Positions 14,627-47,416 of a stretch of 64,000 bases of DNA are shown one piece after another; position 1 is the stretch's first letter, and every line of letters begins with the position of its first letter. Where the stretch lies: the IMG/VR virus record IMGVR_UViG_3300044641_009805, positions 186,001 to 250,000 of that record; one strand, written 5' to 3'. The notes below the pieces were generated by a model that saw only the letters and a program-made list of their open reading frames with translations, was not told the origin of the DNA and did not search any database. Both the position numbers and the translations under genes were made by a program.

Positions 14627-17600
14627 ATGGCTTTTAAATTCGATAACATCGCAGATCTTTATCGCAGTTTCGAGACAGTCGACGTCCTCGGCTCACAAAA
14701 GCAAGCGTCCTTGTCCGGGGTCGAAGGTGCCACGGAGGACATGTTTACAGCTTTACGTAACATTCTGCTTCAAAATAATGATAAAGTTCTCAACGGCGCT
14801 GAGATATTTGCCAAACTCAAAGAGCTTGCGGGAAAAGATAAAGAAAAAAGCAGAACGCTCGCAAAGCTCTTCAGAGTGTACACGACGAACGTTGGAGACA
14901 AGAATGGCAACAGCGGCGCGGAAAGTATCGCAACGTGGTACAATGAAAATGGAAGACCGTCTGCATACACCTACCTAGACAACGACGGTACCTATAAAGA
15001 AGGTAACTTCGATTTGATGATCCCCAAGCTCGCCGGTGATTCAACTGAGATTCCTTATCCCGAGTTGACATACCTCCTCGTCGACGCTCCCAATATTGAC
15101 TTGAAACTTCGCAACGCAGACAAGGCCGAGACGTTTCTAAATTACGTGCCTGGCATCATCGCATCACAGCTCGTGCCTTACCTTTCGGCTGAGTTCACGT
15201 TGCACCGGAACAACGATAAAAACACGACGGCCACGAATCGTCCCTTGATGACGATGAGCCCCCTTAAGTTCTTGTTGGGCGCTGACACGTCGACGATACC
15301 TGACAAGAACAAACCTCTCACCGCGAACGCGATGATCTACGACGCGATGACAAGGAACAACTTCTTTAACTCGGTCGGTATAGAGAAGGTAGATTTTGTT
15401 AAAAGAAAAAATGCGCAGCTGAAGCAGCAATATGATTTTCAATTATTGCAGTACAATTTGTTACCTCCACAAGACAAATTGAAGGCATCCCCACCAAAAG
15501 AGCCAGATTACCTCAAACAGATAGATAATCCGACCCCTGATCCTAAACCCTCAGGAGCTTTCACGACAGTGACGGGTATGGAGATGTTCACCATGCCTCA
15601 GACGCTGATCAACATGGATTATGATCAGACAGCAAGTCCCAGGTATCACCCTGTCATCAATCCCATGTTACCTTTTGGAACCATCACAGATTTTTCTGTC
15701 AACGTCCAATCTTCGGTTGGAACGTTCTCGTTCAAGACGGCGAAGATGACGTTGAAAATATTCGACAGGTCTAGGTTGGTCGAGATAGCCGACTTCATCA
15801 GCCCTAAGCTGTACAAGTCCACGACGATTTGGGTGACGTATGGGTGGCGGGCCCCCGCGCTTCCTGCGAACGATCCGTCACAGGACAATCCTTACTTTCG
15901 TTTCATCAATGAAACAATGCTAAAGAGAGAAGCGTACGGAGTCATCAACTCTAGCATACAGATAGACAGCAACGGCGTGGCGACGGTGACTCTTTCTCTA
16001 TCATCTCAAGGAGGCAATGAGGTGATAATCTCAAGTCCAGACGCTATCTCTAACAGCTTTGACGTGTTCCAGCAGAAGCTCTCCGCCGACATAAGTAGGA
16101 TACAAGAGCTAGCAGCTCGCTTGGGTTTGCCTGCCATCTACGCCGCAGCTCCTGACATCCGTGGTTCAGTGTTGATGTCGTCTGTTAATTCTGGAAACTT
16201 GTCGACTGCGGATACAAAGACTCTGAATGCTGAAATAGCCGGATTGACAAACGCTCTTAATAGTAGTAAGAGTGGCGACGCGGCAACGAAGCAAGAATTT
16301 CTGGGACTGCTAAAAAAGCTTTATTCTCCCGCAAATAACGCGGAGACGGAGCTTGCTAAACAGGCTAACGCAACCTCCGCAGAGAGATTCTCTGAGCTTG
16401 CGAAAGCGAAAGACTTCTTTGCCGTGGTGAAAGACGCAAAAAAGCAGGACGCAAAAAAGTTTGCGAACGATCAACCAGCTCTCACGAAACATCCTCTGCT
16501 TGATATAATGAATAACAGCCCAGGACAAAGAGATTATTCTGAGACCGCTGAGGCTTTGGTGTATGGTGATTACGGTACAAACTCGTTTGGGAAGGTTTTT
16601 GCTGTATACTTCGCCGCCCTGGCCCGCGCCATGGCCGGCAACGTGGTGGATGAGTTTCAGGTCATTTTCTATAAATTAAATCATCGGGCAGGCAAGGCTC
16701 GTGGTTTGAACATAGCTGAGTTCCCGATCGACGTGCCGACTTTGAAATCTGCTTATGCAAAAAGGGTCAAGCAACAAAAGGGTGATCGAATGTCGTTTTC
16801 TTCTTTCATGGAGATCGTTAGAGAATCTCAGTTTGGTGACATGAAGAATCGCGCGTATGGGTTCAGCGATCAATACAAGGTCGACAAGACGAATGGCACT
16901 TTAGTCGCAAAGGATGAAAAAGCCAACACGACCATCTCTAAATTGGCAATCGACAACTGGGGTGCAGATGGTCCATTCTTGTTACCAATGGTGGATTTTT
17001 ACATTGAAACCTTGTCAAAGGGATCCCAACACAGCACGACTGATCTGTTAGAAAAGTACACGATTGCGGCCAACGAATCTGACGGGAGGTTCAAGGCCCG
17101 AGGTCAGACGCGCATCATGAGAATCCACATTTATGACCGCGCGGCGACTCCTCATCAAACCGCCGAGACTTACATGAAAGCTGCGAGCGGTCTAGGATAC
17201 GTCGCTGTCGAGAACGATATCGGTCAGCAGACGGGCACCAGAGTAGTATCGGATGAAAACTCGGCTCAAATGAAGGCGAATGCTGGTCAGCTCGACGCCG
17301 CAAAAGCGGAAATTGGAGATTTAAAACAGAAAACAGGATTGACCGCCCAGCAGACGCTCACTGAGGCTGAATCAATCATCAACAAGCGATTCCCAGGCGC
17401 CAACGTGAAGTTTAAGGCGAGATTTATAAAACCTCGTGGTGAAGATGGCAAATCGGCTCCTAGCTTTGAGGTCATAAAGAGAGAGATCTCGCGCCTGGTT
17501 CCCACCCTAAATGTGGGATCAAACGGCACAATGATCTCTAACGTGAACTATTCCACGAACCAAGACGCGTTGCTGTCCACCATCATGATGCTCAGGAACA

Positions 17601-17965
17601 CTTCCGACGCGGCGAACCCTTCGGAACCCAACGGTTCGGGGGCTGGAGATCTGCCGATGAGAGTCGTGCAGGGCACCATGTCGTTGACGACGATGGGTTG
17701 TCCAATACTCGAATACATGCAACAATTCTTTATAGATCTAAACACTGGTACGACTGTTGACAACCTCTACAACGTCATCAGCCTGAATCACAACATGTCT
17801 CCTGGAAAGTTCACGACAGAGTTGAAGCTAGCCTTTGCCGACGCATATGGAACGTTCGAAGGAGCTCAATCGGTGGTCGCCGGGTTGACCACACAATTAA
17901 GCACTGTTACTGCTGGGATCAATGCCCAGGCCGCCCGCAACGCGCAGAAAAAGCCAGGTGGTTGA
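14627..17965 (+). CDS. Baseplate hub protein (gp27 / P2 gpD-like C-terminus)
   Basis: 1112 aa after the LysM gene. C-terminal MTTMGCP..EYMQQFFID...DNLYNV..LNH..SPGKFTTELKL resembles hub/late-control-D folds. Confidence 0.6.
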   Translation: MAFKFDNIADLYRSFETVDVLGSQKQASLSGVEGATEDMFTALRNILLQNNDKVLNGAEIFAKLKELAGKDKEKSRTLAKLFRVYTTNVGDKNGNSGAESIATWYNENGRPSAYTYLDNDGTYKEGNFDLMIPKLAGDSTEIPYPELTYLLVDAPNIDLKLRNADKAETFLNYVPGIIASQLVPYLSAEFTLHRNNDKNTTATNRPLMTMSPLKFLLGADTSTIPDKNKPLTANAMIYDAMTRNNFFNSVGIEKVDFVKRKNAQLKQQYDFQLLQYNLLPPQDKLKASPPKEPDYLKQIDNPTPDPKPSGAFTTVTGMEMFTMPQTLINMDYDQTASPRYHPVINPMLPFGTITDFSVNVQSSVGTFSFKTAKMTLKIFDRSRLVEIADFISPKLYKSTTIWVTYGWRAPALPANDPSQDNPYFRFINETMLKREAYGVINSSIQIDSNGVATVTLSLSSQGGNEVIISSPDAISNSFDVFQQKLSADISRIQELAARLGLPAIYAAAPDIRGSVLMSSVNSGNLSTADTKTLNAEIAGLTNALNSSKSGDAATKQEFLGLLKKLYSPANNAETELAKQANATSAERFSELAKAKDFFAVVKDAKKQDAKKFANDQPALTKHPLLDIMNNSPGQRDYSETAEALVYGDYGTNSFGKVFAVYFAALARAMAGNVVDEFQVIFYKLNHRAGKARGLNIAEFPIDVPTLKSAYAKRVKQQKGDRMSFSSFMEIVRESQFGDMKNRAYGFSDQYKVDKTNGTLVAKDEKANTTISKLAIDNWGADGPFLLPMVDFYIETLSKGSQHSTTDLLEKYTIAANESDGRFKARGQTRIMRIHIYDRAATPHQTAETYMKAASGLGYVAVENDIGQQTGTRVVSDENSAQMKANAGQLDAAKAEIGDLKQKTGLTAQQTLTEAESIINKRFPGANVKFKARFIKPRGEDGKSAPSFEVIKREISRLVPTLNVGSNGTMISNVNYSTNQDALLSTIMMLRNTSDAANPSEPNGSGAGDLPMRVVQGTMSLTTMGCPILEYMQQFFIDLNTGTTVDNLYNVISLNHNMSPGKFTTELKLAFADAYGTFEGAQSVVAGLTTQLSTVTAGINAQAARNAQKKPGG

Positions 17966-17991
17966 AAATCCGCTCATCGACGTGTTACCAT
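17962..17991 (+). promoter_or_regulatory. Sigma70-like promoter TTGAAA-N18-TACCAT for polA-like gene
   Basis: -35 at 17962-67, extended -10 TG-T-TACCAT at 17986-91, ATG at 18001. Confidence 0.55.
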
Positions 17992-18000
17992 ATATGTTGC

Positions 18001-19188
18001 ATGGATGTTGCTCTAGAATCGTCCTTGTTGGGAACGAACCAACACCTTCTCGTGTCGGATGATGGTTACTCGAGAATCAAAAAGATTCCTGATGAAGTCT
18101 GGCGATGTTCTCTAGACCGCCGTGAGGACGCGACTTTCTGTTGGAATACTCTGCAGATGTTGCATGACAAGTCAGAGGTCCCTCAACCTCCTGAGGCACA
18201 CGTCAGGTCGATTCGTTCCTTGATGAAGGAAGGGATTCCTCCATGGTCGATGGTTCTGCCCCCAACGATCTACAGGACATACCTAGATTCACTCGTGGCT
18301 TTTTCAAAAAAGAAGGTTGATGAAACAACAATCGAATATTATAAGAATATTTGGATGCATGCTTCCTCTCTTCTGTCATCATTAAAACCTGCAAAGGTTG
18401 ATGGTGCATTGGTTGAAGCCTTGTGCGAATCAGTTCACAATTCTCAAATCGTTTCCACATTCAAGGCCCGCGCGGGAGGATACGCTCATCCTATCACGTA
18501 TGACAGGTTTGGGACGGTGACGGGTCGTCTCACAGTGTCCTCAGGTCCAAATATTCTGTTGCTGAAGAAAGAAAACAGGAGGTTGTTGAAACCTTCGACG
18601 ATCGGAGGATACGTGGTTTCATTGGACTTTTCATCTCTTGAAGCGAGGATTCTGCTCTATGAATCCGGCAGAGGTTGCGAAGCGGCCGATCTCTACGCGG
18701 ATATAGCGACACGTTTGGGTGGCATACCCAGGAACGTAGTGAAGGCAGCTGTTCTGGCTGAACTGTATGGATCTTCCAGAAATGCCCTGGCTTTGACTCT
18801 CGGCATGTCAAACGATGACCTATCACGCTTCATAAGCAAAGTTGGAGAGATCATAGACACTCGAGCCTTGCTTTCTAACCTAAAGAGGCAATTTTCTCGT
18901 GAGGGTTTCATCACGAACAAGTATGGTCGAAGGATCGAGGTCTCTCGCCCGCAGGACAACATCTTCATCAATTATTACGCTCAGAGCACGGGCGTCGATG
19001 TGGCTCTCGTAGGATTCAACAAGATTTTGACGTCGCTGGGTAACGACGGGATCAGGCCTCTTTTCGTTCTTCACGATGCTCTCATACTAGACGTAAGAGA
19101 GGACAGGATAAAAGACGTGGAATCCGTCGAGTCAGTTAAAGTTCCAGGTTATGAATTTGAATTTCCGTTGAAGTTAGAAAAAATCTGA
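18001..19188 (+). CDS. polA: Compact family A DNA polymerase (polymerase domain only)
   Basis: TVTGRL, motif A LDFSSLEARIL, motif B KAAVLAELYG, motif C VLHDAL. About 395 aa, with no recognisable 3'-5' or 5'-3' exonuclease domain. Confidence 0.85.
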   Translation: MDVALESSLLGTNQHLLVSDDGYSRIKKIPDEVWRCSLDRREDATFCWNTLQMLHDKSEVPQPPEAHVRSIRSLMKEGIPPWSMVLPPTIYRTYLDSLVAFSKKKVDETTIEYYKNIWMHASSLLSSLKPAKVDGALVEALCESVHNSQIVSTFKARAGGYAHPITYDRFGTVTGRLTVSSGPNILLLKKENRRLLKPSTIGGYVVSLDFSSLEARILLYESGRGCEAADLYADIATRLGGIPRNVVKAAVLAELYGSSRNALALTLGMSNDDLSRFISKVGEIIDTRALLSNLKRQFSREGFITNKYGRRIEVSRPQDNIFINYYAQSTGVDVALVGFNKILTSLGNDGIRPLFVLHDALILDVREDRIKDVESVESVKVPGYEFEFPLKLEKI

Positions 19189-19239
19189 CTCTTCCTTGTC
19201 GCTGTGAACAACAACGTCGTGAAAGAGTAATGTGATTTT

Positions 19240-19836
19240 ATGACATTAAGTCCTGAGAAAATTGCTTCAAACTTTGACAAATTTCGATCTCTGTGTGAGA
19301 GGTTAGGAGATCGATCCGCTGCCGCCCTGTCTCTAGTCGATCATTTCGGCGAGAGATTGGCTTTATGTCCTGCTTCAGGCAGAAAAGAATTTCATTTGGC
19401 AGAACCCGGAGGTTTGGTGGATCATTCTCTTCGCGTTCTCAGCAATGCAATGAAGTTGTGTAAGGCATTTGAATATGATTTGCCAAAGGATTCTCTGATC
19501 ATCGGGTGTCTCTTTCACGATGCAGGAAAGCTGGGAGATCTGGAACAAGATTATTACCTGCCCCAAGACTCAGATTGGCATAGAGATAAGTTGGGTGAGA
19601 CCTACAAACACAACAAAAATATCAAGTACATGACTGTTCCTCATCGAGGCGTTTGGTTGTGTCAGCAATTCGGTCTGCGCCTCACTCAAGATGAGTGGCT
19701 TTCCATCATGTTGAACGATGGATGGGTTCTTCAGGAAAACAAAGCCTACTGTCTAAAGGAATCGAACCTCGTTCACGTCGTACAAACGGCTGATTATCTT
19801 GCGACGAAGCAAGAAAAAGAGATGATTGACGAATAG
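19240..19836 (+). CDS. HD-domain phosphohydrolase
   Basis: HLAEPGGLVDHSLRV, LFHDAGKLG, PHRG, TADY. Preceded by GTGAAC-N18-TAATGT (19204-19233). Confidence 0.85.
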   Translation: MTLSPEKIASNFDKFRSLCERLGDRSAAALSLVDHFGERLALCPASGRKEFHLAEPGGLVDHSLRVLSNAMKLCKAFEYDLPKDSLIIGCLFHDAGKLGDLEQDYYLPQDSDWHRDKLGETYKHNKNIKYMTVPHRGVWLCQQFGLRLTQDEWLSIMLNDGWVLQENKAYCLKESNLVHVVQTADYLATKQEKEMIDE

Positions 19837-19844
19837 TTAGCAGC

Positions 19845-20075
19845 ATGAACGACTTACTACGCCGTTATGTTCTAGAGATCATAAAAGAATCAAGCTTGAA
19901 GATTGATGAAGATGAAGACGAAAAAGAACCAAAGTCAGATTCTGATGACATCAACGAATTTAGCGGCGTAGGCGCAATAGCGGGTTTTACCGCTCCTTTG
20001 GGATGGACGAGTAAAGACATGGAGTCTCCTAAAGTTAAAGAAAGAAAGAAGAGAAAACAACCGGCCTGGAAGTGA
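19845..20075 (+). CDS. Small acidic/basic hypothetical protein with N-terminal helix tag
   Basis: MNDLLRRYVLEIIKE start. ATAGTTA lies 5 nt upstream of the ATG. Confidence 0.7.
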   Translation: MNDLLRRYVLEIIKESSLKIDEDEDEKEPKSDSDDINEFSGVGAIAGFTAPLGWTSKDMESPKVKERKKRKQPAWK

Positions 20076-20076
20076 C

Positions 20077-20385
20077 ATGAAAAGCTTATTTCTACCATAT
20101 GCTGTTCTATTCGTGATAGGCATTGTAGGAGCATTCATCACGAAAAAAGTACAGGCATCTGAGTTACCCATTTGGGTCCCCATATTCCCTTCTATCGCAA
20201 GTGGATTCTTATGGGGGTGGATCGCGAAGAGGTCGGAAAACCTGAGCCTCATGTCCGTTCTTGTTGACGTTCTTTACACGGCTGCTTTCGTCATCGGCTT
20301 CATGATCTTAGGTGACAGACTCACCCCGTTGCAGATAGCAGGATTTTTGGTGTCGTTGATCGGCGTCGCAATGATGGCAGCCTAA
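20077..20385 (+). CDS. Small 4-TM membrane protein, SMR/EamA (DMT)-like
   Basis: Four hydrophobic segments. C-terminal GDRLTPLQIAGFLVSLIGVAMM resembles EamA ends. Confidence 0.6.
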   Translation: MKSLFLPYAVLFVIGIVGAFITKKVQASELPIWVPIFPSIASGFLWGWIAKRSENLSLMSVLVDVLYTAAFVIGFMILGDRLTPLQIAGFLVSLIGVAMMAA

Positions 20386-20638
20386 AATTGCGATTCTGCA
20401 ATATTTATACCATCGACTTGTTCGATGCGGAAACGGACTGGACATGGGAATTAAAAATAAAACTTGCTCTGTCGAATCGGCATCGTGCAAAGTTGACGTC
20501 AGGAATAATAAAACGATACATCTCGTTTACCCTGGCTTAGTTTAAAAATGACTTGAATGTCCAACCAAGACTTGGTTCGCATGTTGCGGATTCGTCAAGG
20601 ATGTTTCATTCACAGCGGAAACGGAAAAGGAAAATAAC
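20386..20638 (+). promoter_or_regulatory. Long structured leader/intergenic region upstream of ssb
   Basis: ATATTTA at 20401; hairpin CATCGA/TCGATG at 20411-27; palindrome AACCAAG-A-CTTGGTT at 20563-77; direct repeat GCGGAAACGGA at 20427 and 20615. Confidence 0.45.
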
Positions 20639-21478
20639 ATGGCAATCGATCTAGAAGCAATCAAGCGTCGCGTGGCAGAACTCAGTGGTGTGAAGAAGAC
20701 GTCATCAGTCCAGATGTGGAAGCCACAAATCGGAGAATACAAGATTCGTTGTCTTCCATGGAAGAATGCTCCTGAGGGCCAACCCTTCGCCGAGAGGTGG
20801 TTCTATTATATTGGAGAGAACGCAGGCCTTCTGGCGCCGAATCAGTTCGGTAAGCCAGATCCCATCAACGATCTGATTCGCAAGCTGTATAGCAGCGGTA
20901 AGCCAGATGATAGGGTTCTTGCGAAGAAGCTTGCCCCTAAGATGCGTTGCTACGCTCCCGTTGTCGTTCGAGGTGAGGAAGACAAGGGCGTGCAGGTTTG
21001 GGCATTCGGCAAGATCGTATATCAGCGTATGCTTGGTTTCTTCCTCGATGAGGAGGTTGGAGACATCTTGGATCCGAACCAAGGATTCGACCTCAAGGTG
21101 ACAATCTCCAAGGCACCAGGCAAGCAGTTCAATGACACGATGGTGGATCCTGCTCGCCGCCCCTCAAAGCTGCATGAGGATCCAAAGGTCATGGCGACGT
21201 GGCTTGAAAACATTCCAAACATCGATGACATGTATCGTCTTAAGTCAACTCAAGAGATTGAAGCAGTCCTCAATAACTGGCTCAATGGTGGCGCGACGGA
21301 TGACACACCTGTTGAGACGACCCGTGGACCTGCAACAGCAGATGCTCTTGAAGATCTTGTGGCAGAAGTGAAAGCTTCGTCTCCTGAGAAGCCGAAGAAA
21401 CCGAAGAAGGCCGATGAGGATGCTCCAAAGAAACAGTCGTTAGATGATGCATTCGCTGACCTGATGGGCGACGAGTGA
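20639..21478 (+). CDS. Single-stranded DNA-binding protein, T4 gp32-like
   Basis: WKP..GEYKIRCLP, PF.E.W.YY, VVVRGEEDKGVQVWAFGK, GFDLKV, acidic C-tail LDDAFADLMGDE. Confidence 0.85.
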   Translation: MAIDLEAIKRRVAELSGVKKTSSVQMWKPQIGEYKIRCLPWKNAPEGQPFAERWFYYIGENAGLLAPNQFGKPDPINDLIRKLYSSGKPDDRVLAKKLAPKMRCYAPVVVRGEEDKGVQVWAFGKIVYQRMLGFFLDEEVGDILDPNQGFDLKVTISKAPGKQFNDTMVDPARRPSKLHEDPKVMATWLENIPNIDDMYRLKSTQEIEAVLNNWLNGGATDDTPVETTRGPATADALEDLVAEVKASSPEKPKKPKKADEDAPKKQSLDDAFADLMGDE

Positions 21479-21490
21479 TTTGACGATATC

Positions 21491-21524
21491 AAGCGCCGGG
21501 GAAATTAAAAAATCCCCGGCGCTT
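21491..21524 (+). terminator. 12-bp perfect hairpin after ssb (probable terminator) overlapping the recA -35 box
   Basis: AAGCGCCGGGGA (21491-502) and TCCCCGGCGCTT (21513-24) with a 10-nt A-rich loop. No U-tract on the + strand. Confidence 0.6.
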
Positions 21525-21552
21525 GAACTATTTAATGCTCTTAAAGGATAAT
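21523..21552 (+). promoter_or_regulatory. Sigma70-like promoter TTGAAC-N18-GATAAT for recA
   Basis: The -10 ends 6 nt before ATG 21559, consistent with a leaderless transcript. Confidence 0.45.
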
Positions 21553-21558
21553 AAACGT

Positions 21559-22746
21559 ATGGCAAAAAGAGAGAAGTCTGAAGAGATTGAGACCGTGACT
21601 AAAAAGTCCGAAGTTGATAACATGATGAAAGATCTCATTTCATCTATCAATAAGGAGTTTGGTCAACGCATCGCATATAACCTGTCAGAGATGGATGCAC
21701 CCACTGTCGTAAAACGGTGGATTGACACAGGATCTATTCAGCTCAATTATGCGATTAGAAACGCGATGGATGGAGGATATCCAGAAGGACGAATCATAGA
21801 GATTGCAGGATTGCCTTCATCAGGTAAATCGCATCTTGCTTACCATGCAGCCAGCGTCGCGCAACGAATGGGTGGTCTTGTCGTCTATATAGACACAGAG
21901 AATGCAACTCCTGTTGCCAAGCTCGCCGACATGGGTATTGATGTACGTAAGAGATTTGTCTACTGCGATTCTCATTGCACAGAAGAGGTATTCTCCATCA
22001 TAGAATCTACCATCACTAAGGCGAAGCAAGTCCTTGATAAGAACATTCCAATCCTCGTCATTTGGGATTCAGTGGCTGCAACTTCTCCGAAGGCAGAGTT
22101 GGATGGCGATTACGATCAAAATTCGATCGGCCTTCAGGCCCGTGCCATTTCCAAAGGAATGCGCAAGATCACAGGCGTGATTGGTCAGAACAACGTGACT
22201 CTTCTCTGTATCAATCAAATTCGTGATGCCATTGGAGTCATGCATGGCGATCCAACGACAACACCAGGTGGTCGTGCAATTCCATTTCACTCGTCCGTCC
22301 GCATCCGTCTTGGTAGCGGAAATCAAGTGAAAGACAAAAATGGTAATCCGATCGGTATTCACACGACTGTCACTCTCAAAAAGAATAAAGTTGCAGCTCC
22401 TTTCCGCAAGTGCGAATTTGACATTATCTTCGGCAAAGGTATTGTTGAGGATGAGTATCTCTTTGATGAAGTTCGATCTCATTGCAAAGCAAATGGAGCT
22501 GTAAAACGAGATGGTCTTGAGATTAACATTAGCGGAGAAGGCGCTTGGAAAGAGTTATCAGTCGTCAATGCAAAAACAGGCGAAGTTATGGTAGAGAAAA
22601 AGTTCTACAAATCAGAGTTTGGTGACATGTTGAAGGATGAGAAATATCGTAACTATCTTTTGACGGCTATTGATTCTGCTCTTGTAACGACTGGCGGAGA
22701 GCCTTCTGGCGAAGGAGATGGTGAAGGAGGAATGTCAGATGAGTGA
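21559..22746 (+). CDS. recA: RecA/UvsX recombinase
   Basis: DTGSIQLN, Walker [51 protein letters not shown]. Confidence 0.95.
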
Positions 22747-23278
22747 TATATTCTGGATTCGATGTGAAGTAGACAGTGACGATCTTGTTCCGAAGTATCA
22801 AACACAAGGATCAGCAGGGTGTGATCTATACGCTAACGAGTATCTGACGATCAAACCTGGTCAAAGGGCTACTGTAGCGACTGGGTTAAAGATTGAACTG
22901 CCTCCTGGATTTGAAGCCCAAGTCAGACCTAGATCTGGGTTAGCTGCCAAATATGGTATCACTGTTCTTAATTCTCCAGGAACAGTAGATTGTTTTACTT
23001 CAAATTGTTTGATTTCAACTCCTGCTGGAAAAAAGCAAGTATTTGATTTGAAGATAAATGATGTCGTGTTTTCTATGAATGAACAGACTCTTTGTGTCGA
23101 AAGCGATGTGATAAGCGCAATTGTTGATGTAGGTGAAAAAGATGTAATCAAATTTGTTTTTGATGATGACACAGAACTGTGCGTAACTCCAGGAACGATG
23201 ATTTATACTCGAGATGGGCTTAAAAGAGCTGATGAGCTATCATATGATGATGAAATTGTAATTGACCATGATACTTAA
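22739..23278 (+). CDS. dut: dUTPase N-terminal extein (84 aa) fused to N-half of split intein (95 aa)
   Basis: dUTPase motifs AGCDL, PRSGLA, GTVD, then intein block [11 protein letters not shown] at 22991, ending at TAA 23276-78. SD GGAGG precedes ATG 22739. Confidence 0.9.
22991..23275 (+). mobile_element. Split intein N-fragment (IntN)
   Basis: Begins with Cys1. Hint-fold pattern STPAG.KQV.DLKIND.V.S...[15 protein letters not shown]...TRDG.KRADEL. Strongly acidic. Confidence 0.88.
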
Positions 23279-23283
23279 TTATC

Positions 23284-24210
23284 ATGGTGAAATGTCTAAT
23301 TTGTAATCTAGAAAAGAAGTTTTCTATAGTTGAGCATCTTCGTAATACTCACAAAATATCAACAAAAGAATATCGACTGCGGTTCAAAGATGCAGAAGTA
23401 AAATCTCTTGAAGCAAAAGAGTTGGTCTCAAAAAACAATCGTAATGTTTGGTCCAATCCCGACTATCACAAGAAGATGTGCGAATCTCGTCAAGTTACTC
23501 ATAGAACGGATGCATTTCGAAAAAAACAATCTGAAATAATATCAAACACATATGCAAACGGTCATAAAAACTGGAATGATGGACTTACAAAGCATGATGA
23601 TGAACGTGTTGCTGCGGTTGGAAAAAGAAATTCTGCGCTTTTGACAGGTCGCACAAAAGAAACTCATGATTATCTAAAAAATCATAGTGATTTTATGAAA
23701 GAACACGTCTCTGATGAATTTAAATTTCGTCTGTCATGGACGGATGAAAGAAAAGAGCAATGGAGACAAAAGATTAGTGAAGGTGTTTCTGAAGCTATTT
23801 TAGAAGGTCGTTGTGGATCATCAAATAGATACAAAAAAGGGTGGTATCTTACTAAGATAGGATCAAAAGAATTTTACGATTCTTCTTGGGAACTTGAATT
23901 AATGACATTTCTTGACACAACATCGCTTTCATGGACAAAAGCTCATGGGTATAAAATTTCTTATATCGATGAAAACAATAAAACAAGACGTTACATTCCT
24001 GATTTTTACATCTACAACGATGACAAAAAATGCATTTTAGAGCTAAAAGGATTTAGCTTCAACGATAATAAAATAGAAAGAAAAAGTTCATCTGCTGAAT
24101 TGTTCGCCTTTAGCATTAATGCACGCTATTTTTTGTCTTTTAGCCTTGATGAATCGAAAAAATATATCATTAATTTTTTTGGAGAAAAAAATGAAGTTTG
24201 TAAAAATTAA
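23284..24210 (+). CDS. Free-standing homing-type endonuclease between the split-intein halves
   Basis: CLIC..HLRNTH finger, WNDGLTK repeat, C-terminal YDSSWE...YIPDF....ILELKG PD-(D/E)XK core. Different frame from dut; AT-rich. Confidence 0.82.
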   Translation: MVKCLICNLEKKFSIVEHLRNTHKISTKEYRLRFKDAEVKSLEAKELVSKNNRNVWSNPDYHKKMCESRQVTHRTDAFRKKQSEIISNTYANGHKNWNDGLTKHDDERVAAVGKRNSALLTGRTKETHDYLKNHSDFMKEHVSDEFKFRLSWTDERKEQWRQKISEGVSEAILEGRCGSSNRYKKGWYLTKIGSKEFYDSSWELELMTFLDTTSLSWTKAHGYKISYIDENNKTRRYIPDFYIYNDDKKCILELKGFSFNDNKIERKSSSAELFAFSINARYFLSFSLDESKKYIINFFGEKNEVCKN

Positions 24211-24298
24211 AAATAAAACAACGCATAATGAACGATGTTATGATCTTACAGTAGAAAATAATCACAATTTTTTTTGTAATGATGTTCTTGTTCACAAT
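24191..24298 (+). mobile_element. Split intein C-fragment (IntC)
   Basis: Block F YDLTV..NHNF and block G VHN, followed by Cys+1 (24299-301). Basic N-terminus. Confidence 0.9.
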
Positions 24299-24487
24299 TG
24301 TGACTATCGAGGGGAAATTAAGGTCATTTTGTTGAACACAGGTGACGAAGAATTTATTGTCAATAAAGGCGATAGGATTGCACAGTTGGTATTTTCTCGA
24401 GTTTTTCGTGGGATATTCCAACCAACCAACAGTTTGTCTTCAACGACCCGCGGCAGTGGTGGATTCGGTTCTACAGGCAAAACATGA
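24191..24487 (+). CDS. dut: Split intein C-half (36 aa) fused to dUTPase C-terminal extein (62 aa)
   Basis: Own SD GGAG (24181-84) and ATG 24191. MKFVKIK...CYDLTVENNHNFFCNDVLVHN|CDYRGEIKV...GDRIAQL...RGSGGFGSTG. Confidence 0.9.
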   Translation: MKFVKIKNKTTHNERCYDLTVENNHNFFCNDVLVHNCDYRGEIKVILLNTGDEEFIVNKGDRIAQLVFSRVFRGIFQPTNSLSSTTRGSGGFGSTGKT

Positions 24488-25455
24488 GTTCAGATCGTCC
24501 CATCTTGGTTATTGATGGAGCAAATCTTTTTATTAGGTCATGGGCGGCATACCCACAAATGTCGACCCATGGCTATCAAATGGGAGGTTGCATCGGTTTT
24601 CTTAAGACGTTGAAAAGAATCACAACTGAGTTACAGCCTTCAATGATCTGTATAGCGTGGGAAGGTGGGGGTTCTCTAAGACGTAGATCAATTTATCCTG
24701 AATATAAGCTTGGTAGACGTCCTGAGAAGCTCAACCGTTTTTACGGAGATGATATACCTGAGTCAGAAGAGAACAGGAAACATCAGCTTATTTCTCTATT
24801 GAACATGCTAAAAAATTCTCCTGTTTGCCAAGTTTACGCCTCTGATTGCGAGGGTGATGACATAGTTGCGTTTCTTTGTTCGGGGCCATTTAAGCAAAAT
24901 AAAAAGATCATAGTTTCTTCTGACAAAGACATGTATCAACTGTTGGATGCAAATACTTCGATCTATTCTCTTCATAAGAAAAAAGTCTTGACAGTTGATG
25001 ACGTCTTTGAAGAATTCCGAATAAAACCCAACAACTTCGCAGCCGCCAAGGCGTTATGTGGAGATCCTGGAGATAACATTCCTGGAGTAAAAGGGTTGGG
25101 GTTTAAGACGGTTTCTAAAAAACTTCCTATATTGGGAACAGATGATGATCTCTTGATAGAGGACATCATTTCGTTTTGTCAATCCAGGATTGGAGAATCT
25201 ACTGTTTATAAGAAGGTCGTAGACAATCAAGATTTGATCAACAGAAATTGGAGATTGGTATACCTAGATGGTAGTATGTTGTCAGCATCTCAAATTTCTA
25301 AAGTGCAACATACGTTAGATACATTCGTTCCGCACGTTAATAAGATCGGATTGATCAAAGCCCTCCTCAAAGAAGGAATCAACGATTTTGATGTTGAGGC
25401 ATTTTTTTATTCAATGAACTGTATTGACAGCGCGAAATACGTGACTGGTAACTAA
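24484..25455 (+). CDS. 5'-3' exonuclease / flap endonuclease (Pol I N-terminal, T4 RNase H-like)
   Basis: IDGANLFIR, EGDDIVA, SSDKDMYQL, GDPGDNIPGVKGLG.KT. Confidence 0.92.
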   Translation: MSSDRPILVIDGANLFIRSWAAYPQMSTHGYQMGGCIGFLKTLKRITTELQPSMICIAWEGGGSLRRRSIYPEYKLGRRPEKLNRFYGDDIPESEENRKHQLISLLNMLKNSPVCQVYASDCEGDDIVAFLCSGPFKQNKKIIVSSDKDMYQLLDANTSIYSLHKKKVLTVDDVFEEFRIKPNNFAAAKALCGDPGDNIPGVKGLGFKTVSKKLPILGTDDDLLIEDIISFCQSRIGESTVYKKVVDNQDLINRNWRLVYLDGSMLSASQISKVQHTLDTFVPHVNKIGLIKALLKEGINDFDVEAFFYSMNCIDSAKYVTGN

Positions 25456-25456
25456 A

Positions 25457-26893
25457 ATGTTAGAAAACGAAAATAAAAACAAGTTAACCTTTGGATCTTA
25501 CGGTAAGTCTTTTCAAGAGAAGATCATGCAGGCTCTCTTGACTGACTCGAAATTTGCCGAGCAGATGATGGAAGTGTTTGACACTTCTTACTTTGAGTTG
25601 AAGTACTTACAGTTCCTTGCTGATCGATACTTTTCATATTCAAAGAAATATAAGGTTTTTCCAACCCTTCAATTGCTCGTCACCATTATTAGAGAGGATT
25701 TGAAGGTTGGTACAGACGTTATCCTTCGAGATCAAATCATTGAGTATCTCCAAAGGATGAAGGCCAATCCAGATCCAGGAGATCTGCAATTTGTTCGTGA
25801 AAAGTCTCTTGACTTTTGTAGGAAGCAGGCTCTAAAAGCAGCTTTGGAAAATGCTGTTGATCAGATGCAGGCAAACAAATATGAATCGATCGTCGAATCG
25901 ATTAAGAAGGCCGTTCAGGTTGGCACAGCTCCGTCTGTCGGTCATGACTTCTTTAACGAGATGGACGCTCGATTCACACGTCTGAAACGTGACACAATTC
26001 CGACAGGCGTACCTGAGCTTGATAAGAAAGAGATTCTGCAAGGTGGTTCTGGTAAGGGAGAACTTTTGTGTGTTGTCGGAGGAAGCGGAAGCGGAAAGTC
26101 TCACTGGCTCACAATGATTGGAGCCAATGCTCTGCGTGCAGGTAAAAACGTCATGCACTACACCTTTGAGCTATCTGAGACAGCCGTTGGTATTCGTTAC
26201 GATTCAAACCTTTGCGACATGGATTCTAATGAAGTCATGGATCATAAAGACGAGGTTGCTGAGAAGTATAAGAACATGAACCTCGGTCGACTTTACATTA
26301 AGGAATATCCAACCAACACAGCGTCTATCTTCACGATCCGTTCGCATATTGAACGTCTCGACCTAAAAGGTTTTAAACCGGACATTATCATCATTGATTA
26401 TGCTGACATCATGAGATCAACTCGTCAGTTTGATTCTCTTCGTCACGAATTGAAATTGGTATATGAGGAGCTGCGAGGTCTTGCAATGGAATTAGGCGTT
26501 CCAATCTGGACAGCATCGCAATCGAATAAAGAAGGAGCCAATAGCGAGATCATCGACATGACAAATATGTCAGAAGCTTACGGAAAGGCTATGATTTGCG
26601 ACTTCATCATATCAGTCTCTAGACGACCACATGAGAAGGCTTCAGGCTGGGGTAGACTCTTTGTCGCAAAGAATCGAGCAGGTAGAGATGGACTTGTTTT
26701 TCCTGCCAAGATCAACACTGCTCAGAGTAAATTTGAGATTACAGGAGCAGCAGATACGCCAGAAGAAACTTCATCCTCAGATGAAGTTGAACAGAAAAAA
26801 GCCTTAAGAGCCAAATGGAAAGAACTAAAAAATGAATTTTCTAGTTCAAGAAACTTTTCGAGCGCAGAATCAGTAACAACGGTTGGAAGTTAA
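25457..26893 (+). CDS. dnaB: Replicative DNA helicase, DnaB/gp41-like
   Basis: Walker A GGSGSGKS, TFELSE, IDYADIM, WTASQSN, AKNRAG. Confidence 0.9.
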   Translation: MLENENKNKLTFGSYGKSFQEKIMQALLTDSKFAEQMMEVFDTSYFELKYLQFLADRYFSYSKKYKVFPTLQLLVTIIREDLKVGTDVILRDQIIEYLQRMKANPDPGDLQFVREKSLDFCRKQALKAALENAVDQMQANKYESIVESIKKAVQVGTAPSVGHDFFNEMDARFTRLKRDTIPTGVPELDKKEILQGGSGKGELLCVVGGSGSGKSHWLTMIGANALRAGKNVMHYTFELSETAVGIRYDSNLCDMDSNEVMDHKDEVAEKYKNMNLGRLYIKEYPTNTASIFTIRSHIERLDLKGFKPDIIIIDYADIMRSTRQFDSLRHELKLVYEELRGLAMELGVPIWTASQSNKEGANSEIIDMTNMSEAYGKAMICDFIISVSRRPHEKASGWGRLFVAKNRAGRDGLVFPAKINTAQSKFEITGAADTPEETSSSDEVEQKKALRAKWKELKNEFSSSRNFSSAESVTTVGS

Positions 26894-26943
26894 GATATAG
26901 TTATGCATCCCAAGAATTCAATGAATTGGAGACGGAACGTAAT

Positions 26944-29526
26944 ATGAAAACATACACGTATAATGAAGCATATGAAGCATCGTTGGACTACTTTAAGGGA
27001 GACGAGCTCGCTGCATCAGTCTTTGTTTCAAAGTACGCGCTGCGCGATTCTAAAGGAGGCATTTTAGAAAAGACGCCTACTGACATGCATCTGCGTCTCA
27101 CTCGTGAGTTTGCTCGTATTGAAGCCAAGTATCCAAATCCTCTTTCGGAGAAAGAGATTTTCTGTCTCCTTGCTGACACTGATCATCTAGACGTCACACA
27201 AAAGTCGACAATGACGCTTGAACAATTGGCAGCCGAATCGCGAGGCATTGGGGCAGTCGTTCCGCAAGGTTCTCCAATGTCTGCCATGGGCAATCCATAC
27301 AAGCTTCAATCATTGTCTAACTGCTTCGTTATAGCTTCTCCGCAAGATTCTTATGGCGGAATTCTATTCACGGATCAGGAACAGGCGCAAATCATGAAAC
27401 GTCGTGGTGGCGTTGGTTTCGACGTCTCTACGATTCGTCCCAAAGGCCTTGCCACAGCCAATGCAGCTGGAACGACCGATGGTATCGGCGTCTTTATGGA
27501 GAGGTTCTCCAACACATGCCGTGAGGTTGCTCAAGGTGGTCGTCGTGGAGCACTAATGCTCACAATTTCGGTGATGCATCCTGAGGTTGAGACTTTCATC
27601 AACATCAAACGAGATCTAAAGAAAGTCACAGGAGCAAACATCTCTGTTCGTCTCACTGACGAATTTATGAATGCAGTGAAAGATGATAAGGAATTTACTC
27701 TTCGTTGGCCAGTCGAGGTACCTGTTGAAGAAGCTAAAGTTACCAAGATCGTCAAGGCTCGAGAGCTTTGGAATCAGGTCATCGATGCCGCATGGACTTC
27801 TGCAGAACCAGGTCTTCTATTCTGGGATACAGTCAAGAAGATGACACCAACTGAGGCATATGCTTCAAAAGGATACGCCAACGTTTCTACGAATCCTTGC
27901 GCTGAGCTGATTCTCAGCCCTTACGATTCTTGCCGCCTTCTTCTCATCAACCTCACAAAGTTTGTGAAGGACGCATACCTTCCCACGGCTTCATTCGATT
28001 TTGATAAGTTCAAGAAAGTTTCTGCAAAAGCGCAAAAGTTGATGGATGATCTTGTCGATCTTGAGATTGAGGCCGTCGATGCTATCTTGAAAAAGATTGG
28101 ATCCGACCCTGAGAGTGAAGAGGTCAAACAACATGAGGTCAACCTCTGGCAAAAAATCAAAAAAGCTGCCTCAGGCGCCCGTCGCACAGGACTTGGAATC
28201 ACTGGCATCGGAGATGCTCTGGCTTCGATTGGCGTAACCTATGGTTCTGAAGAGTCAGTTCATAAGACAGAAGAGATTTATAAAACGTTGGCTCTTTCCG
28301 CTTATCGATCTTCAGTCGACATGGCAAAGGACAGAGGATCATTCCCCGTCTATGATTGGTCTTTAGAAAACGAAAGTCCATTTTTAAAGAGAGTTATGGA
28401 AGCTGATAAGGCCTTATTTGCAGATTGGGTGAAATACGGTCGTCGCAACATTGCGTTGACAACGACTGCTCCGGCAGGGTCTGTTTCATGCCTCACGCAA
28501 ACGACAAGCGGTATTGAACCAGCTTACCTTCTTTCCTACACACGCCGTAAGAAGATTAACCCTAATGACACCGCATCACGAGTTGATTTTATCGATCAGC
28601 TTGGTGATAAGTGGCAGGAGTATAAGGTCTACCACCACGGTTTCAAGAAGTGGATGGATGCCACAGGAAAGGTAGATGAGCAAATTGCAGAGTCACCCTA
28701 CTGGAAGGCAACAAGCAATGATGTTGACTGGCCTATGTCCGTCAAGCTTCAGGCTGCTGCTCAAAAGTGGGTCTGCCATGCAATCTCTAAGACCTGTAAC
28801 CTTCCTAATGATGTGACAAGAGAAGTTGTTGCTGACGTTTATATGGCTGCCTGGGAGGCCGGATGCAAGGGTTTCACTGTCTATAGAGATGGATGCCGTA
28901 CAGGCGTTCTAGTTCAGGATACTCCCAAGGAGACAAAGAAGGTTGATGACAGCCAGCCAGAAACCATGATAGAAAATCATGCTCCAAAGCGACCGAAGGA
29001 ATTACCATGCGATATTCATCGAATTAACGTAAAGGGTTCTGAAGGTCAGGAATCATATCTTGTCCTGGTCGGCAGGCTTGAAGGAAAGCCATACGAGATC
29101 TTCTGTGGCCTATCACATCACGTTGAAGTTCCGAAGAAGGCGAAGGTAGGAAATCTTATCAAGAATGGTAAGAAGGATGGAGTTGCAACATACAATCTTC
29201 AGATTCCTGTTGGGGATGACGATAACCTTGTTTTCAAGGACATTGTGGAGTTGTTCTCCAATCCAAATCACGGAGCTTTTACAAGATCCCTCTCGCTTGC
29301 TCTACGCCATGGGGTTCCTGTTCAATACGTTGTTGAACAGCTACAAAAAGACAAATACAGTGATATGCAATCTTTCTCTAGAGTCTTGGCCCGCGTTCTA
29401 AAAGGATACATTCCTGACGGCGCAAAATCAACGTCTGACAAGACGTGTCCTGAGTGTGGATCTAACTCTCTAGTTTACAAAGAAGGATGCGTCACATGTA
29501 ACAGCTGCTCTTGGAGCAAGTGTTGA
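26944..29526 (+). CDS. nrdJ: Adenosylcobalamin-dependent (class II) ribonucleotide reductase
   Basis: LSNCFV, RRGGVG, RRGALM, active site NPCAEL, TTAPAGS, GCKGFTVYRDG, C-terminal TSCPD-like domain and CPECG..C..C zinc ribbon. Confidence 0.95.
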   Translation: MKTYTYNEAYEASLDYFKGDELAASVFVSKYALRDSKGGILEKTPTDMHLRLTREFARIEAKYPNPLSEKEIFCLLADTDHLDVTQKSTMTLEQLAAESRGIGAVVPQGSPMSAMGNPYKLQSLSNCFVIASPQDSYGGILFTDQEQAQIMKRRGGVGFDVSTIRPKGLATANAAGTTDGIGVFMERFSNTCREVAQGGRRGALMLTISVMHPEVETFINIKRDLKKVTGANISVRLTDEFMNAVKDDKEFTLRWPVEVPVEEAKVTKIVKARELWNQVIDAAWTSAEPGLLFWDTVKKMTPTEAYASKGYANVSTNPCAELILSPYDSCRLLLINLTKFVKDAYLPTASFDFDKFKKVSAKAQKLMDDLVDLEIEAVDAILKKIGSDPESEEVKQHEVNLWQKIKKAASGARRTGLGITGIGDALASIGVTYGSEESVHKTEEIYKTLALSAYRSSVDMAKDRGSFPVYDWSLENESPFLKRVMEADKALFADWVKYGRRNIALTTTAPAGSVSCLTQTTSGIEPAYLLSYTRRKKINPNDTASRVDFIDQLGDKWQEYKVYHHGFKKWMDATGKVDEQIAESPYWKATSNDVDWPMSVKLQAAAQKWVCHAISKTCNLPNDVTREVVADVYMAAWEAGCKGFTVYRDGCRTGVLVQDTPKETKKVDDSQPETMIENHAPKRPKELPCDIHRINVKGSEGQESYLVLVGRLEGKPYEIFCGLSHHVEVPKKAKVGNLIKNGKKDGVATYNLQIPVGDDDNLVFKDIVELFSNPNHGAFTRSLSLALRHGVPVQYVVEQLQKDKYSDMQSFSRVLARVLKGYIPDGAKSTSDKTCPECGSNSLVYKEGCVTCNSCSWSKC

Positions 29527-46800: not shown

Positions 46801-47416
46801 GTTGTGGAATGATGATGGTTCATGGAAACATTCCAAATTTAACAAGCGAGCTTTTGAAGGTCTCATCTCCATCAGAGCGTTTGACTCTCTTGACTGCGTA
46901 GGTGAAGGAAAAACATTTAACAGCTACAAACAGATGCATCACATCTTGATTGATAAAGGTGCCGATATCAAGAAAACTTCAAAGAAAAATCCTACTCTCG
47001 GTATGGAAAACTTTCGAAATCTTTTGATAGAAACAAATGACATGGATGAGTGGACTCGTGGGGAGTTGGTTGACAACAGCGTGAAATATCTTGGATCATT
47101 CAACTCTAACATTTTAGTTTCTCAAGAACTGATTGCAAAGCTAGAATCTAAAGGTGTCAAATCCATCGACCTCATCGAGCAAACTGACGTTTATTGGTTC
47201 ATTATTTCTGACGTAAAAGAAAAAAAGACGAAGAACGGAAAGCCATACTTGCTTCTGACGGCAATAGGCCTTGAAGGCCAAACCCGTCGGATCTTTTGTT
47301 GGGGATGGGATGGCCGAACTGAGTTGCCGAAGTACTCCACATGCATAGCAGAAATTACTGTCGATAATTACGGTAATAAAACTTTTATGAGCAAGGTTAA
47401 GGTAATCGATGAATAA
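43832..47416 (+). CDS. dnaE: DNA polymerase III alpha subunit (family C)
   Basis: PHP domain HAHS.FS..DG, TDHG, GCE, DSHY; GPGRGSAAGSLV, PDIDSD, RHAGG, KFDLLGL, FQEQ, YGFNASHA. No intein. Confidence 0.96.
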   Translation: MTRDNKTASPTRFVGLHAHSTFSQYDGLDYPQEHIDYVLENGMDAWSLTDHGNMNGFCHAFLHAEKMKKSGKNFKFIPGCEMYVHPDLTQWKKDLEASKVKPAKDESIITPITAVVDGDDETTDVGTDEAALTVENEDETKSGKYNDPVKRRHHLVVLPKTSVGLQRLFHLVSRGYMEGFYRFPRIDYSMLKEAAKGDHLMISTACLGGPLAFDAFEQLQKVPFEELKHQLLNDRSLLDRIIATMSNTYDKLVDAVGRDNVCLELQFNKLPAQHLVNRALIEFSKRNSLRDRVVVTCDSHYSRPENWKEREIYKKLGWLNYQNFDPSLLPKSKDDLKCELYPKNAKQVWESYLSTTEGMDFYDDEFVKDAIERTHDIVHNELGDIQPDKTMKLPSYVIPEGTTEDKALVVACKNGLKWRGLDSRQDYIDRIKYELGIIKGKKFSRYFLTMKAIMDIAREHMLIGPGRGSAAGSLVAYVLGITNLDPIEYDLSFERFLNPSRTGAPDIDSDISDRDLLIELLRKNLGERNVIPISNYNTFRLKSLIKDIARFYSIPFEEVNAALAPVEDDVKKEVFKPGTDKNLFVLTYEDAIKYSKSLQDFIAAHPEVAEPIEILFKQNRSLGRHAGGVIVSEDVAERMPLILARGEAQTPWVEGMNYKHLEEFGWIKFDLLGLETLRIIERCIGLILERREGVKNPDFKQIRAWFDKHMDPKNIDLNDQKVYEYVYHEGRFAGIFQLTQTGAQRLFTKAKPRSIIDIATLTSIYRPGPLAANVDKLYIDAKNNPDKIDYQHPLIKKVLESTYGCIIFQEQTMRLCSVVAGFPEAETDTIRRNIMKRSASKKDDAAADARKAKEEFVLGAVKNGVNEKVASELYDKILFFSGYGFNASHAVSYAIDSYYCAWLLTYYEEEWLCAYLESMSGNDEKRAKAFSEVKALGYKIVPIDVNYATKSWTILEGKRFMPSFLSCKGIGEAAIDEIVENRPYKSVEEMLWNDDGSWKHSKFNKRAFEGLISIRAFDSLDCVGEGKTFNSYKQMHHILIDKGADIKKTSKKNPTLGMENFRNLLIETNDMDEWTRGELVDNSVKYLGSFNSNILVSQELIAKLESKGVKSIDLIEQTDVYWFIISDVKEKKTKNGKPYLLLTAIGLEGQTRRIFCWGWDGRTELPKYSTCIAEITVDNYGNKTFMSKVKVIDE

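Follow-up and report, generated by a model that had tools for sequence, protein, structure and literature searches.

Fractured genes with split inteins were described by Dassa et al. 2009 (PMC2677866) from the Global Ocean Sampling (GOS) metagenomes (gp41-1, gp41-8, NrdJ-1, NrdA-2, and IMPDH-1). In these loci the host is a phage gene of DNA metabolism, and three open reading frames (ORFs) lie on one strand: the N-terminal half of the intein (IntN), at the end of the first host fragment, has 88–105 amino acids (aa), the C-terminal half (IntC), at the start of the second, has 33–54 aa, and the gene between them encodes a GIY-YIG or Vsr-like endonuclease that carries a hairpin at its start in 15 of 16 loci and overlaps IntC by 6–69 bp. 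Here we describe a dUTPase gene of this type in a 64,000-nucleotide stretch of DNA (the window; positions 186,001 to 250,000 of the IMG/VR virus record IMGVR_UViG_3300044641_009805). From its sequence and that of its relatives, we put at roughly 80% the probability that it is a genuine fractured dUTPase gene in a jumbo-phage replication module, with halves that would be joined by protein trans-splicing and a nuclease that would act in homing.

Two other phage systems resemble the locus in part. In the nrdA/mobE region of Aeromonas phage Aeh1 (Friedrich 2007; Crona 2011, PMC3045599), a free-standing endonuclease likewise splits a gene of nucleotide metabolism, a hairpin controls translation of the endonuclease, and the endonuclease overlaps the downstream fragment; no intein is involved there, however, and the fragments assemble non-covalently. 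The dCTP deaminase of cyanophage vB_AphaS-CL131 (PMC6293099), a phage enzyme of the dUTPase/dCTP-deaminase superfamily, carries an intein that excises itself and is the nearest one reported in the dUTPase superfamily. Unlike the intein in the window, it is contiguous and cis-splicing with a nested HNH endonuclease, it keeps the block-B His (CTPDHNF), and it is inserted at GKSTYAR/CG (a slash marks the intein junction throughout), the counterpart of motif 2 and not of motif 3.

Architecture of the fractured dUTPase locus

All features of the locus lie on the plus strand. ORF1 (22739–23278) begins at ATG 22739, 8 nt downstream of a Shine-Dalgarno (SD) sequence AAGGAGG read from the sequence (22724–22730), and ends at TAA 23276–23278. 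It encodes dUTPase residues 1–84 (the N-extein, 22739–22990), which comprise motifs 1 and 2 together with motif 3 as far as GTVD and end in NSPGTVD, followed by an IntN of 95 aa that opens with Cys1 (TGT 22991) and runs to the TAA (22991–23278). Only 5 nt past this stop, and in another frame, begins the ORF of what is putatively a free-standing homing endonuclease of 308 aa (23284–24210), whose 3' end overlaps the IntC ORF by 20 nt. ORF3 (24191–24487), which shares the reading frame of ORF1, has its own ATG at 24191, 6 nt after an SD sequence GGAG (24181–24184) that falls within the 3'-terminal part of the nuclease ORF. It encodes an IntC of 36 aa (24191–24298; MKFVKIKNKTTHNERCYDLTVENNHNFFCNDVLVHN, ending VLVHN; Pfam Intein_splicing E 7e-7) and the C-extein (24299–24487), which starts with Cys+1 (TGT 24299) and DYRGEIKV, contains dUTPase motifs 3b, 4, and 5, and ends at TGA 24485–24487, overlapping the ATG of a downstream 5'-3' exonuclease gene. 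An initial annotation, made from the DNA alone, had drawn the same boundaries for the dUTPase-IntN ORF ending in TAA, for the separate nuclease ORF in another frame, and for ORF3 with its own GGAG and ATG, the HN end of IntC, and CDYRGEIKV behind it; each was recovered at the same coordinates.

Both outer ORFs match the Pfam dUTPase family PF00692 (E 2e-13 for the N-extein, 6e-17 for the C-extein) and, in sequence searches of the PDB, dUTPase structures (7n56, E 1.7e-19, for the N-extein; E 3e-16 for the C-extein). When joined, the exteins of 84 aa and 62 aa present the five motifs of trimeric dUTPases in order (AGCDL, RPRSG, GTVD/CDYRGE, GDRIAQL, and RGSGGFGSTG) in a protein of 146 aa. The initial annotation had foreseen a product of this length with the junction in motif 3, and the length is indeed that of dUTPase alleles without the intein. 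The inserted DNA stands apart from its surroundings in base composition: the G+C content is 43.7% in the N-extein and 43–44% across the exteins and recA, but 34% in IntN, 32.5% in the nuclease gene, and 23% in IntC. Because of this difference, the AT-rich element is compositionally foreign to its host gene.

The catalytic residue of dUTPases is the first Asp of motif 3 (Asp90 in Escherichia coli, Asp83 in Mycobacterium tuberculosis). We take Asp84, which is the first Asp of motif 3 here and occupies position -1 of the intein, to be the equivalent residue; since the intein follows it directly, neither fragment would then be expected to be active alone.

The three-ORF arrangement was recovered in six IMG/VR contigs (L001–L006), of which the two largest measure 278 kb and 213 kb. 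L001, L002, L003, and L006 encode identical versions of all three products, and L004 and L005 differ in ORF1 alone (98% identity). An uninterrupted dUTPase of 146 aa is encoded by ten further contigs (L007–L010 and L012–L017), in which GTVD runs straight into EDYRGE (...CCAGGAACCGTAGAT/GAAGACTACAGAGG... around the insertion site); in L011 the insert is absent too, and the gene is cut off at the contig end. The intact alleles begin with MSDIFW, as ORF1 does, and their N-terminal half is 82–96% identical to the N-extein of the window. At the +1 site, intein-less alleles have Glu or Ser and the fractured gene has Cys. Because the intact alleles join GTVD to EDYRGE, the inserted element can be delimited as the 1308 bp of IntN, nuclease, and IntC at 22991–24298, with the Glu codon at +1 replaced by Cys.

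Some uninterrupted dUTPases (P0198 and P0200) read TID/CDYRGEIK and thus have Cys at the position that would be +1 of the intein. Such a Cys may represent natural variation by which the site is pre-adapted, or a footprint left when an intein was lost precisely.

The initial annotation had recognized the fractured-gene layout, and the assignment stands on all of the structural features described by Dassa et al. 2009: three ORFs on one strand, intein halves within the reported size ranges, a hairpin at the start of the endonuclease, an overlap of nuclease and IntC genes, and a phage host gene of DNA metabolism. Three points set the locus apart from those loci: dUTPase lies outside their eight hosts, the spacer before the nuclease is 5 nt here and 27–51 nt there, and the endonuclease is predicted to be neither GIY-YIG nor Vsr-like. 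To these is added the absence of the block-B His, to which we return below.

A family of dUTPase split inteins at one insertion site

The initial annotation had treated the locus as a single case, and the size of the family behind it had been missed. Among the best 120 matches to IntC and the C-terminal part of dUTPase, at least about 60 clusters carry the intein at the same site, and all end in HN/C. A search of 1.84 billion representative sequences with IntN returned 153 matches, which were classified by host from the residues upstream of Cys1; 47 of them are hosted by dUTPase, corresponding to at least 47 family clusters at 50% identity. The relatives that combine dUTPase-N with IntN are 35–72% identical to the window protein, and their IntN ends about 91–99 residues past Cys1. 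All 35 dUTPase-hosted proteins for which the remaining length was computed end exactly at the end of IntN, and 5 extra residues follow it in one of eleven further ones; as the 35 proteins stop at that point, their inteins are split. No contiguous dUTPase intein occurs among the 153 IntN matches, whose other members reside in UvsW-type helicases, DnaE, ribonucleotide reductase (RNR), and other proteins. Taken from these matches, the locus is assigned to a large, old family, all of whose members occupy one site directly after the motif-3 Asp.

The three-part layout was also present at the loci of the six relatives that were examined. Four related loci lie in syntenic jumbo-phage contexts (L020, L023, L036, and L039), and three lie in unrelated contexts (L026, L029, and L032), beside a PolB-exonuclease, glycosyltransferases, or an intein-containing IMPDH; such use of one intein site in unrelated phages speaks for mobility. 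Further mobile elements are found near several fractured dUTPases (L029:5363-7525, L030, and L026:343-2799): an IMPDH gene that harbors a Hom_end_hint intein follows immediately downstream, and large ORFs with LAGLIDADG_3 matches lie upstream.

The dUTPase split-intein family was found in metagenomes only. Searches with tblastn using IntN, IntC-extein, and nuclease revealed no dUTPase intein in 50,697 GenBank phage records, where the matches of IntN were UvsW and terminase inteins at 29–34% identity; a DNA-level search of the phage collection gave short matches at chance level only, and an IntC profile run against species-representative genomes gave, among the matches listed, one unrelated IntC-like fragment in a metagenome-assembled genome (MAG). 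No report of an intein in dUTPase was found in the literature searched. Together with the absence of dUTPase from the eight hosts of Dassa et al., these searches are consistent with the suggestion of the initial annotation that dUTPase is a new host for a split intein.

The IntC-like fragment (L035:3001-3111, MAG JAUYAT010000022.1) is an isolated peptide, MKFSKIKKINILPAEQVYDIEVEGTHNFVANGIIAHN/T, and has no dUTPase context.

The coding regions of the window, L020, and L023 were compared; among these three, synonymous sites are saturated. The proportion of nonsynonymous differences (pN) was 0.18–0.35, and that of synonymous differences (pS) was 0.63–0.84, in N-extein, IntN, nuclease, IntC, and C-extein alike. 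At the protein level, the three are 49–64% identical in the exteins, 51–60% in IntN, 50–53% in the nuclease, and 67–72% in IntC. As pN lies far below pS at saturation, all three ORFs have been kept coding over a long divergence.

Intein halves and the loss of the block-B histidine

IntN is acidic, with 20 Asp and Glu residues, 8 Lys and Arg residues, and an isoelectric point (pI) of 4.1, as the initial annotation had described it. The basic character ascribed to IntC holds for its first 15 residues, which are strongly basic (pI 10.5), but is mild for IntC as a whole (pI 7.85). IntN gave weak Pfam matches to Hint_2/Hint after residue 84 of ORF1, and its best sequence matches in the PDB were the Ssp DnaB mini-intein (E 6.5e-4) and NrdJ-1 (E 0.15). 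IntC matched C-terminal regions of inteins with E 3e-4 to 9e-4 (6y75, 9hth, 8ubs of NrdJ-1, and 6qaz of gp41-1).

The close resemblance of IntC to gp41-1 that had been proposed at first did not hold up. Sequence likeness to gp41-1 and NrdJ-1 is confined to generic motifs, which for gp41-1 are those of blocks F and G; IntN has no gp41-1 match at E<=10, and the IntC match to 6qaz (E 8.5e-4) extends over just 25 residues (12–36) and ranks behind several other inteins. In charge, the N-acidic/C-basic arrangement is that of NrdJ-1 and IMPDH-1 (N-negative/C-positive), whereas gp41-1 is N-positive/C-negative. These comparisons argue against a close kinship with gp41-1.

Most residues expected of a class 1 intein are present. 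The nucleophile at the first position, Cys or Ser in this class, is Cys1 in 36 of 36 classified dUTPase IntN sequences, and blocks F and G supply Asp F:4, His F:13, and the His-Asn end, followed by Cys+1 (YDLTVENNHNFF...VLVHN/C). Block B departs from the TxxH pattern, a feature that the initial annotation had overlooked: Thr B:7 is present (T66), and B:10 is a Thr as well (T66-P-G-T69). In the alignment to Ssp DnaB, V-T-P-G-T-M-I-Y-T of the window stands over A-T-A-N-H-R-F-L-T, placing TPGT over TANH, and the consensus "Tpnh" of the family hidden Markov model (HMM) is likewise aligned to TPGT. Because both comparisons place TPGT there, His B:10 is replaced by Thr. The replacement is a trait of the host group, as the B:10 column reads Thr, Ser, Gln, or Lys in 46 of 47 dUTPase-hosted IntNs, with His in the remaining one, and His in 67 of 68 related inteins from other hosts. 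Two other residues mark the same group: the first motif-3 Asp occupies position -1 of every dUTPase-hosted intein, and Asp39 of IntN is near-invariant in this group only.

His B:10 is the most conserved residue of inteins according to the review by Mills, Johnson, and Perler in 2014, which lists two inteins without it, namely a pseudogene and Tko CDC21-1, the latter compensating through Lys58. Friedel et al. found that extein residues at -1 can compensate for the loss of the block-B His. Like the dUTPase intein, CDC21-1 and the inteins orthologous to it (Tori et al. 2012, as quoted by PMC4031507 and PMC6333167) are natural inteins without His B:10, and they are reported to splice by compensation; a further likeness to CDC21-1 lies in the weak matches of IntC to the structures 6rpq and 6rpp. 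Those inteins, however, are contiguous and archaeal, with Lys58 compensating and Leu at -1, whereas the dUTPase intein is split and phage-borne, has Asp at -1, and showed no equivalent Lys.

It is owing to the missing His that the locus is more than one further split intein, and owing to it, too, that our claim of splicing stays below certainty. By their sequences, ORF1 yields dUTPase(1–84)-IntN and ORF3 yields IntC-dUTPase(85–146). If the halves do splice, IntN, which is acidic, and the N-terminal part of IntC, which is basic, would, judging from sequence, associate into a HINT fold. The N-S acyl shift, the first step, would have to proceed through some compensation for the block-B His, and Cys1, the terminal Asn, and Cys+1 would carry out protein trans-splicing. 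This would give a dUTPase of 146 aa whose sole difference from the intein-less alleles is a Glu to Cys change at a variable position of motif 3, the fragments being presumably inactive up to that point. As a tentative proposal, which we consider less likely than not, the dUTPase-hosted split inteins may form a natural and widespread family in which the N-S acyl shift takes place in the absence of His B:10 by host-specific compensation, for example through the -1 Asp of motif 3 or through the family-specific invariant Asp39/Glu37 of IntN. Such a family might constitute a distinct mechanistic subclass and a source of pairs orthogonal to gp41-1, Npu, and NrdJ-1.

Protein ligation, segmental labelling, and split-effector technologies are built on natural split inteins, and more can be assembled in one pot with every additional orthogonal pair. 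While the fractured-gene layout is known, the dUTPase host and its insertion site, the endonuclease family, and the family-wide non-canonical block B are new. Relative to the literature searched, the locus thus brings a new host and site together with dozens of natural sequence variants. The loss of His B:10 in the dUTPase family and its retention in sister inteins amount to a natural experiment on the replacement of a catalytic residue by extein context. A His-less acyl shift, if true, would define a distinct mechanistic subclass as well as a source of orthogonal split inteins.

The free-standing endonuclease and its proposed role in homing

The nuclease has a C2H2-type zinc finger at its N terminus (C4, C7, H18, and H23; C-x2-C...H-x4-H in the alignment), helices in its middle region, and a PD-(D/E)xK domain at its C terminus. 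Its catalytic motif is E203...P239-D240...E253-x-K255; across 14 sequences, E203, P239, D240, and E253 do not vary and K255 is nearly invariant. Pfam matches were weak (Tn7_TnsA-like_N and ROS_MUCR), PHROG 22215 and 15137, both annotated as "endonuclease", were matched, and a sequence search of the PDB gave no match. In the AlphaFold model, block means over 10 residues of the predicted local distance difference test (pLDDT) were about 87–94 for residues 1–60 and 86–95 for most of 190–300. The top Foldseek matches of the model were TnsA (9bw1, E 2e-4; 1f1z, E 5e-3; probability 1.0), followed by Bax1, the R2 restriction-like endonuclease (RLE), and Hjc; Vsr and I-Bth0305I were not among the best 50 of 564 matches, and the nuclease has ELKG in place of the FWH-like motif that provides the His general base of Vsr-type active sites. 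Given the catalytic motif and the TnsA-type structural matches, the protein is predicted to be a canonical PD-(D/E)xK, TnsA-like enzyme, neither GIY-YIG nor Vsr-like, and this type is new among the endonucleases described from fractured genes. The separate nuclease ORF of the initial annotation is therefore supported by both motif and fold, and the zinc finger and TnsA-like type are additions to it. I-Ssp6803I and the Vsr-like/EDxHD family (I-Bth0305I) provide other cases of a restriction-endonuclease-like fold serving in homing; the enzyme in the window differs from them in its canonical E...PD...ExK motif, its likeness to TnsA, Bax1, and Hjc, and its N-terminal C2H2 zinc finger.

Thirteen homologues of the nuclease were found, of which one is a 244-aa fragment identical to the nuclease in the window and the others have identities of 36–78%. 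Both of the two homologues whose genomic context was examined sit in fractured dUTPase loci, and another homologue, P0123, is encoded on a contig of 2,243 bp that matches in length, and is therefore probably identical with, the contig of the dUTPase-IntN protein P0004. The only match among GenBank phages was a distant free-standing homologue with NUMOD3, located between genes in Bacillus phage Moonbeam.

The gene in the nuclease position varies considerably among the relatives. In L036 the nuclease of the fractured dUTPase locus lacks the zinc finger and is 51% identical to that of the window; L026, from a distant lineage, has a 177-aa nuclease without the middle region; L039 retains a zinc-finger remnant only; and the same intein site in L032 is occupied by a Cys-rich and Vsr/DUF559-like nuclease (EFYGSYWHC, with a DUF559 match). 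L029 has a truncated Cys-rich ORF in the nuclease position, and in L030 such an ORF is shorter still. Stages of a homing cycle are thus seen, in which the nuclease is intact, shortened at its N terminus, deleted internally, reduced to a remnant, or replaced by one of Vsr/DUF559-like type, and their occurrence at one site supports the model in which free-standing endonucleases invade inteins and thereby create split inteins.

Translation of the nuclease is likely to be restrained. In an RNA hairpin over the ORF1 stop (23262–23291; inverted repeat I5), the final codons of IntN pair with the start codon of the nuclease, the AUG at 23284–23286, which lies in the 3' arm. The folding energy of the hairpin is -12.3 kcal/mol (z = -3.7), and 0 of 200 shuffled sequences were as stable; equivalent hairpins are present in L020 (-16.4), L023 (-9.0), and L026 (-20.0). 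With the AUG buried in the hairpin, translation of the nuclease would be low or late. Conservation of the IntN tail DHDT among close relatives may be due to the hairpin as well.

In the proposed homing step, the endonuclease would cut intein-less dUTPase alleles of co-infecting relatives, and repair would copy the entire element together with flanking extein sequence. Comparison with L005, a related phage contig of 213 kb, is consistent with such an event. Pairwise alignment, scored as differences per 200 bp, revealed a tract of 100% identity at 22849–24635, which covers the element, 142 bp of the N-extein, and up to 148 bp past the dUTPase stop. On the upstream side, the two contigs differ at 17–87 positions per 200 bp (about 70–90% identity) in recA and over the initial 110 bp of the dUTPase gene, and at the protein level RecA is 81% identical and nuclease and IntC are 100% identical. 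The tract looks like the outcome of a homing event with co-conversion around the insertion.

Alternative explanations

Several observations weigh against the interpretation as a trans-splicing gene with a homing nuclease. Thr at B:10 could mean that N-terminal activation is slow or impaired, and a phage dUTPase may be dispensable, so that a crippled gene could persist for a while. As regards homing, blocks with 0–6 differences per 200 bp alternate with blocks of 25–87 (20739–22938 and 25539–27138) across 18739–27275 of the alignment with L005; since other blocks are also near-identical, the tract around the element could stem from general mosaic recombination. Moreover, the nuclease gene has no obvious SD sequence.

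We consider it rather unlikely, but worth weighing, that the halves no longer splice, and that the dUTPase fragments are either held together non-covalently, as in Aeh1 NrdA, or belong to a decaying pseudogene in a phage for which host dUTPase suffices. The absence of the block-B His from the window and from 46 of 47 family members fits this explanation, as do the degraded pseudogene that is one of the His-less inteins in the 2014 review and the precedent for assembly without splicing in PMC3045599. A loss of splicing is difficult to reconcile, however, with the finding that about 60 IntC and 47 IntN clusters keep Cys1, the closing His-Asn pair, and Cys+1 without exception, when intein-less alleles have Glu or Ser at +1, or with pN far below pS in every segment at saturating synonymous divergence. 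Furthermore, because the junction lies within an active-site motif beside the presumed catalytic Asp, a retained intein of 131 aa should block the active site.

Far less probable is that the nuclease ORF resides in a group I intron, whose removal at the RNA level would fuse IntN and IntC into a cis-splicing mini-intein. ORF1 and ORF3 do share one frame, and introns encoding endonucleases are frequent in phage genes; but an Rfam scan of 22400–24800 at E<=1 gave no intron model and a chance snoRNA match only, the 5-nt gap before the nuclease and the 20-nt overlap after it leave no non-coding space for an intron core, and the GGAG and ATG of ORF3 itself are kept across the family. An assembly or sequencing error, by which false frameshifts would have broken a contiguous dUTPase intein with its endonuclease, has nothing in its favor beyond being a general possibility in metagenome assemblies and can be dismissed with near certainty, because six assemblies of independent origin are the same, or almost the same, at every base and dozens of homologues, at 35–72% identity, share the positions of the IntN end and IntC start, the nuclease being in addition a complete ORF of a free-standing family that also occurs between genes in phage Moonbeam.

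Genome context and further inteins among the relatives

The window represents the part of an uncultured jumbo phage that serves replication and nucleotide metabolism. Its genes are ordered PolA-like, gp32-like single-stranded DNA-binding protein, RecA/UvsX, fractured dUTPase, 5'-3' exonuclease, DnaB-like helicase, class II RNR, and DnaE-like polymerase, and in the closest GenBank phages DnaE is only about 30% identical. No tRNA genes were found in the window, a scan with the family HMMs revealed no further intein in it, and scans for promoters and terminators gave nothing convincing.

Relatives of IntN may point to a second group of fractured genes. A number of proteins of 314–335 aa (P0263, P0277, P0279, P0294, P0305, P0309, P0320, P0323, P0325, P0363, and others) end at the end of a related IntN, and Pfam matches to UvsW_N, ResIII, or DEAD were obtained in 12–19 of the 65 IntN relatives in the set that includes them. 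These sequences would suggest fractured genes for UvsW-type helicases, a host missing from the 2009 list. Among the IntN relatives there are examples in DnaE and RNR, too.

In one relative (L021:1-2484, Logan SRR31843399_110575), the recA/UvsX gene beside the fractured dUTPase is itself fractured. Its RecA ends LRTAIG/CVSPETKLTVRRREINT and stop, leaving an IntN of just 17 aa, which is followed by a 304-aa Vsr-like nuclease (EHHGDYWHC) and then by an IntC of about 146 aa ending GLLSHN/TMHGDPD; the intact RecA allele in L020 reads AIGVTHGDPD. By its sequence, recA of L021 looks like a gene broken by an atypically split intein.

Upstream in the window, a 1112-aa ORF without a Pfam match (14627–17965) directly precedes a 408-aa ORF (17962–19188) with a partial match to the DNA_pol_A profile (positions 76–352 of 381), and a full DnaE-like polymerase is encoded at 43832–47416.

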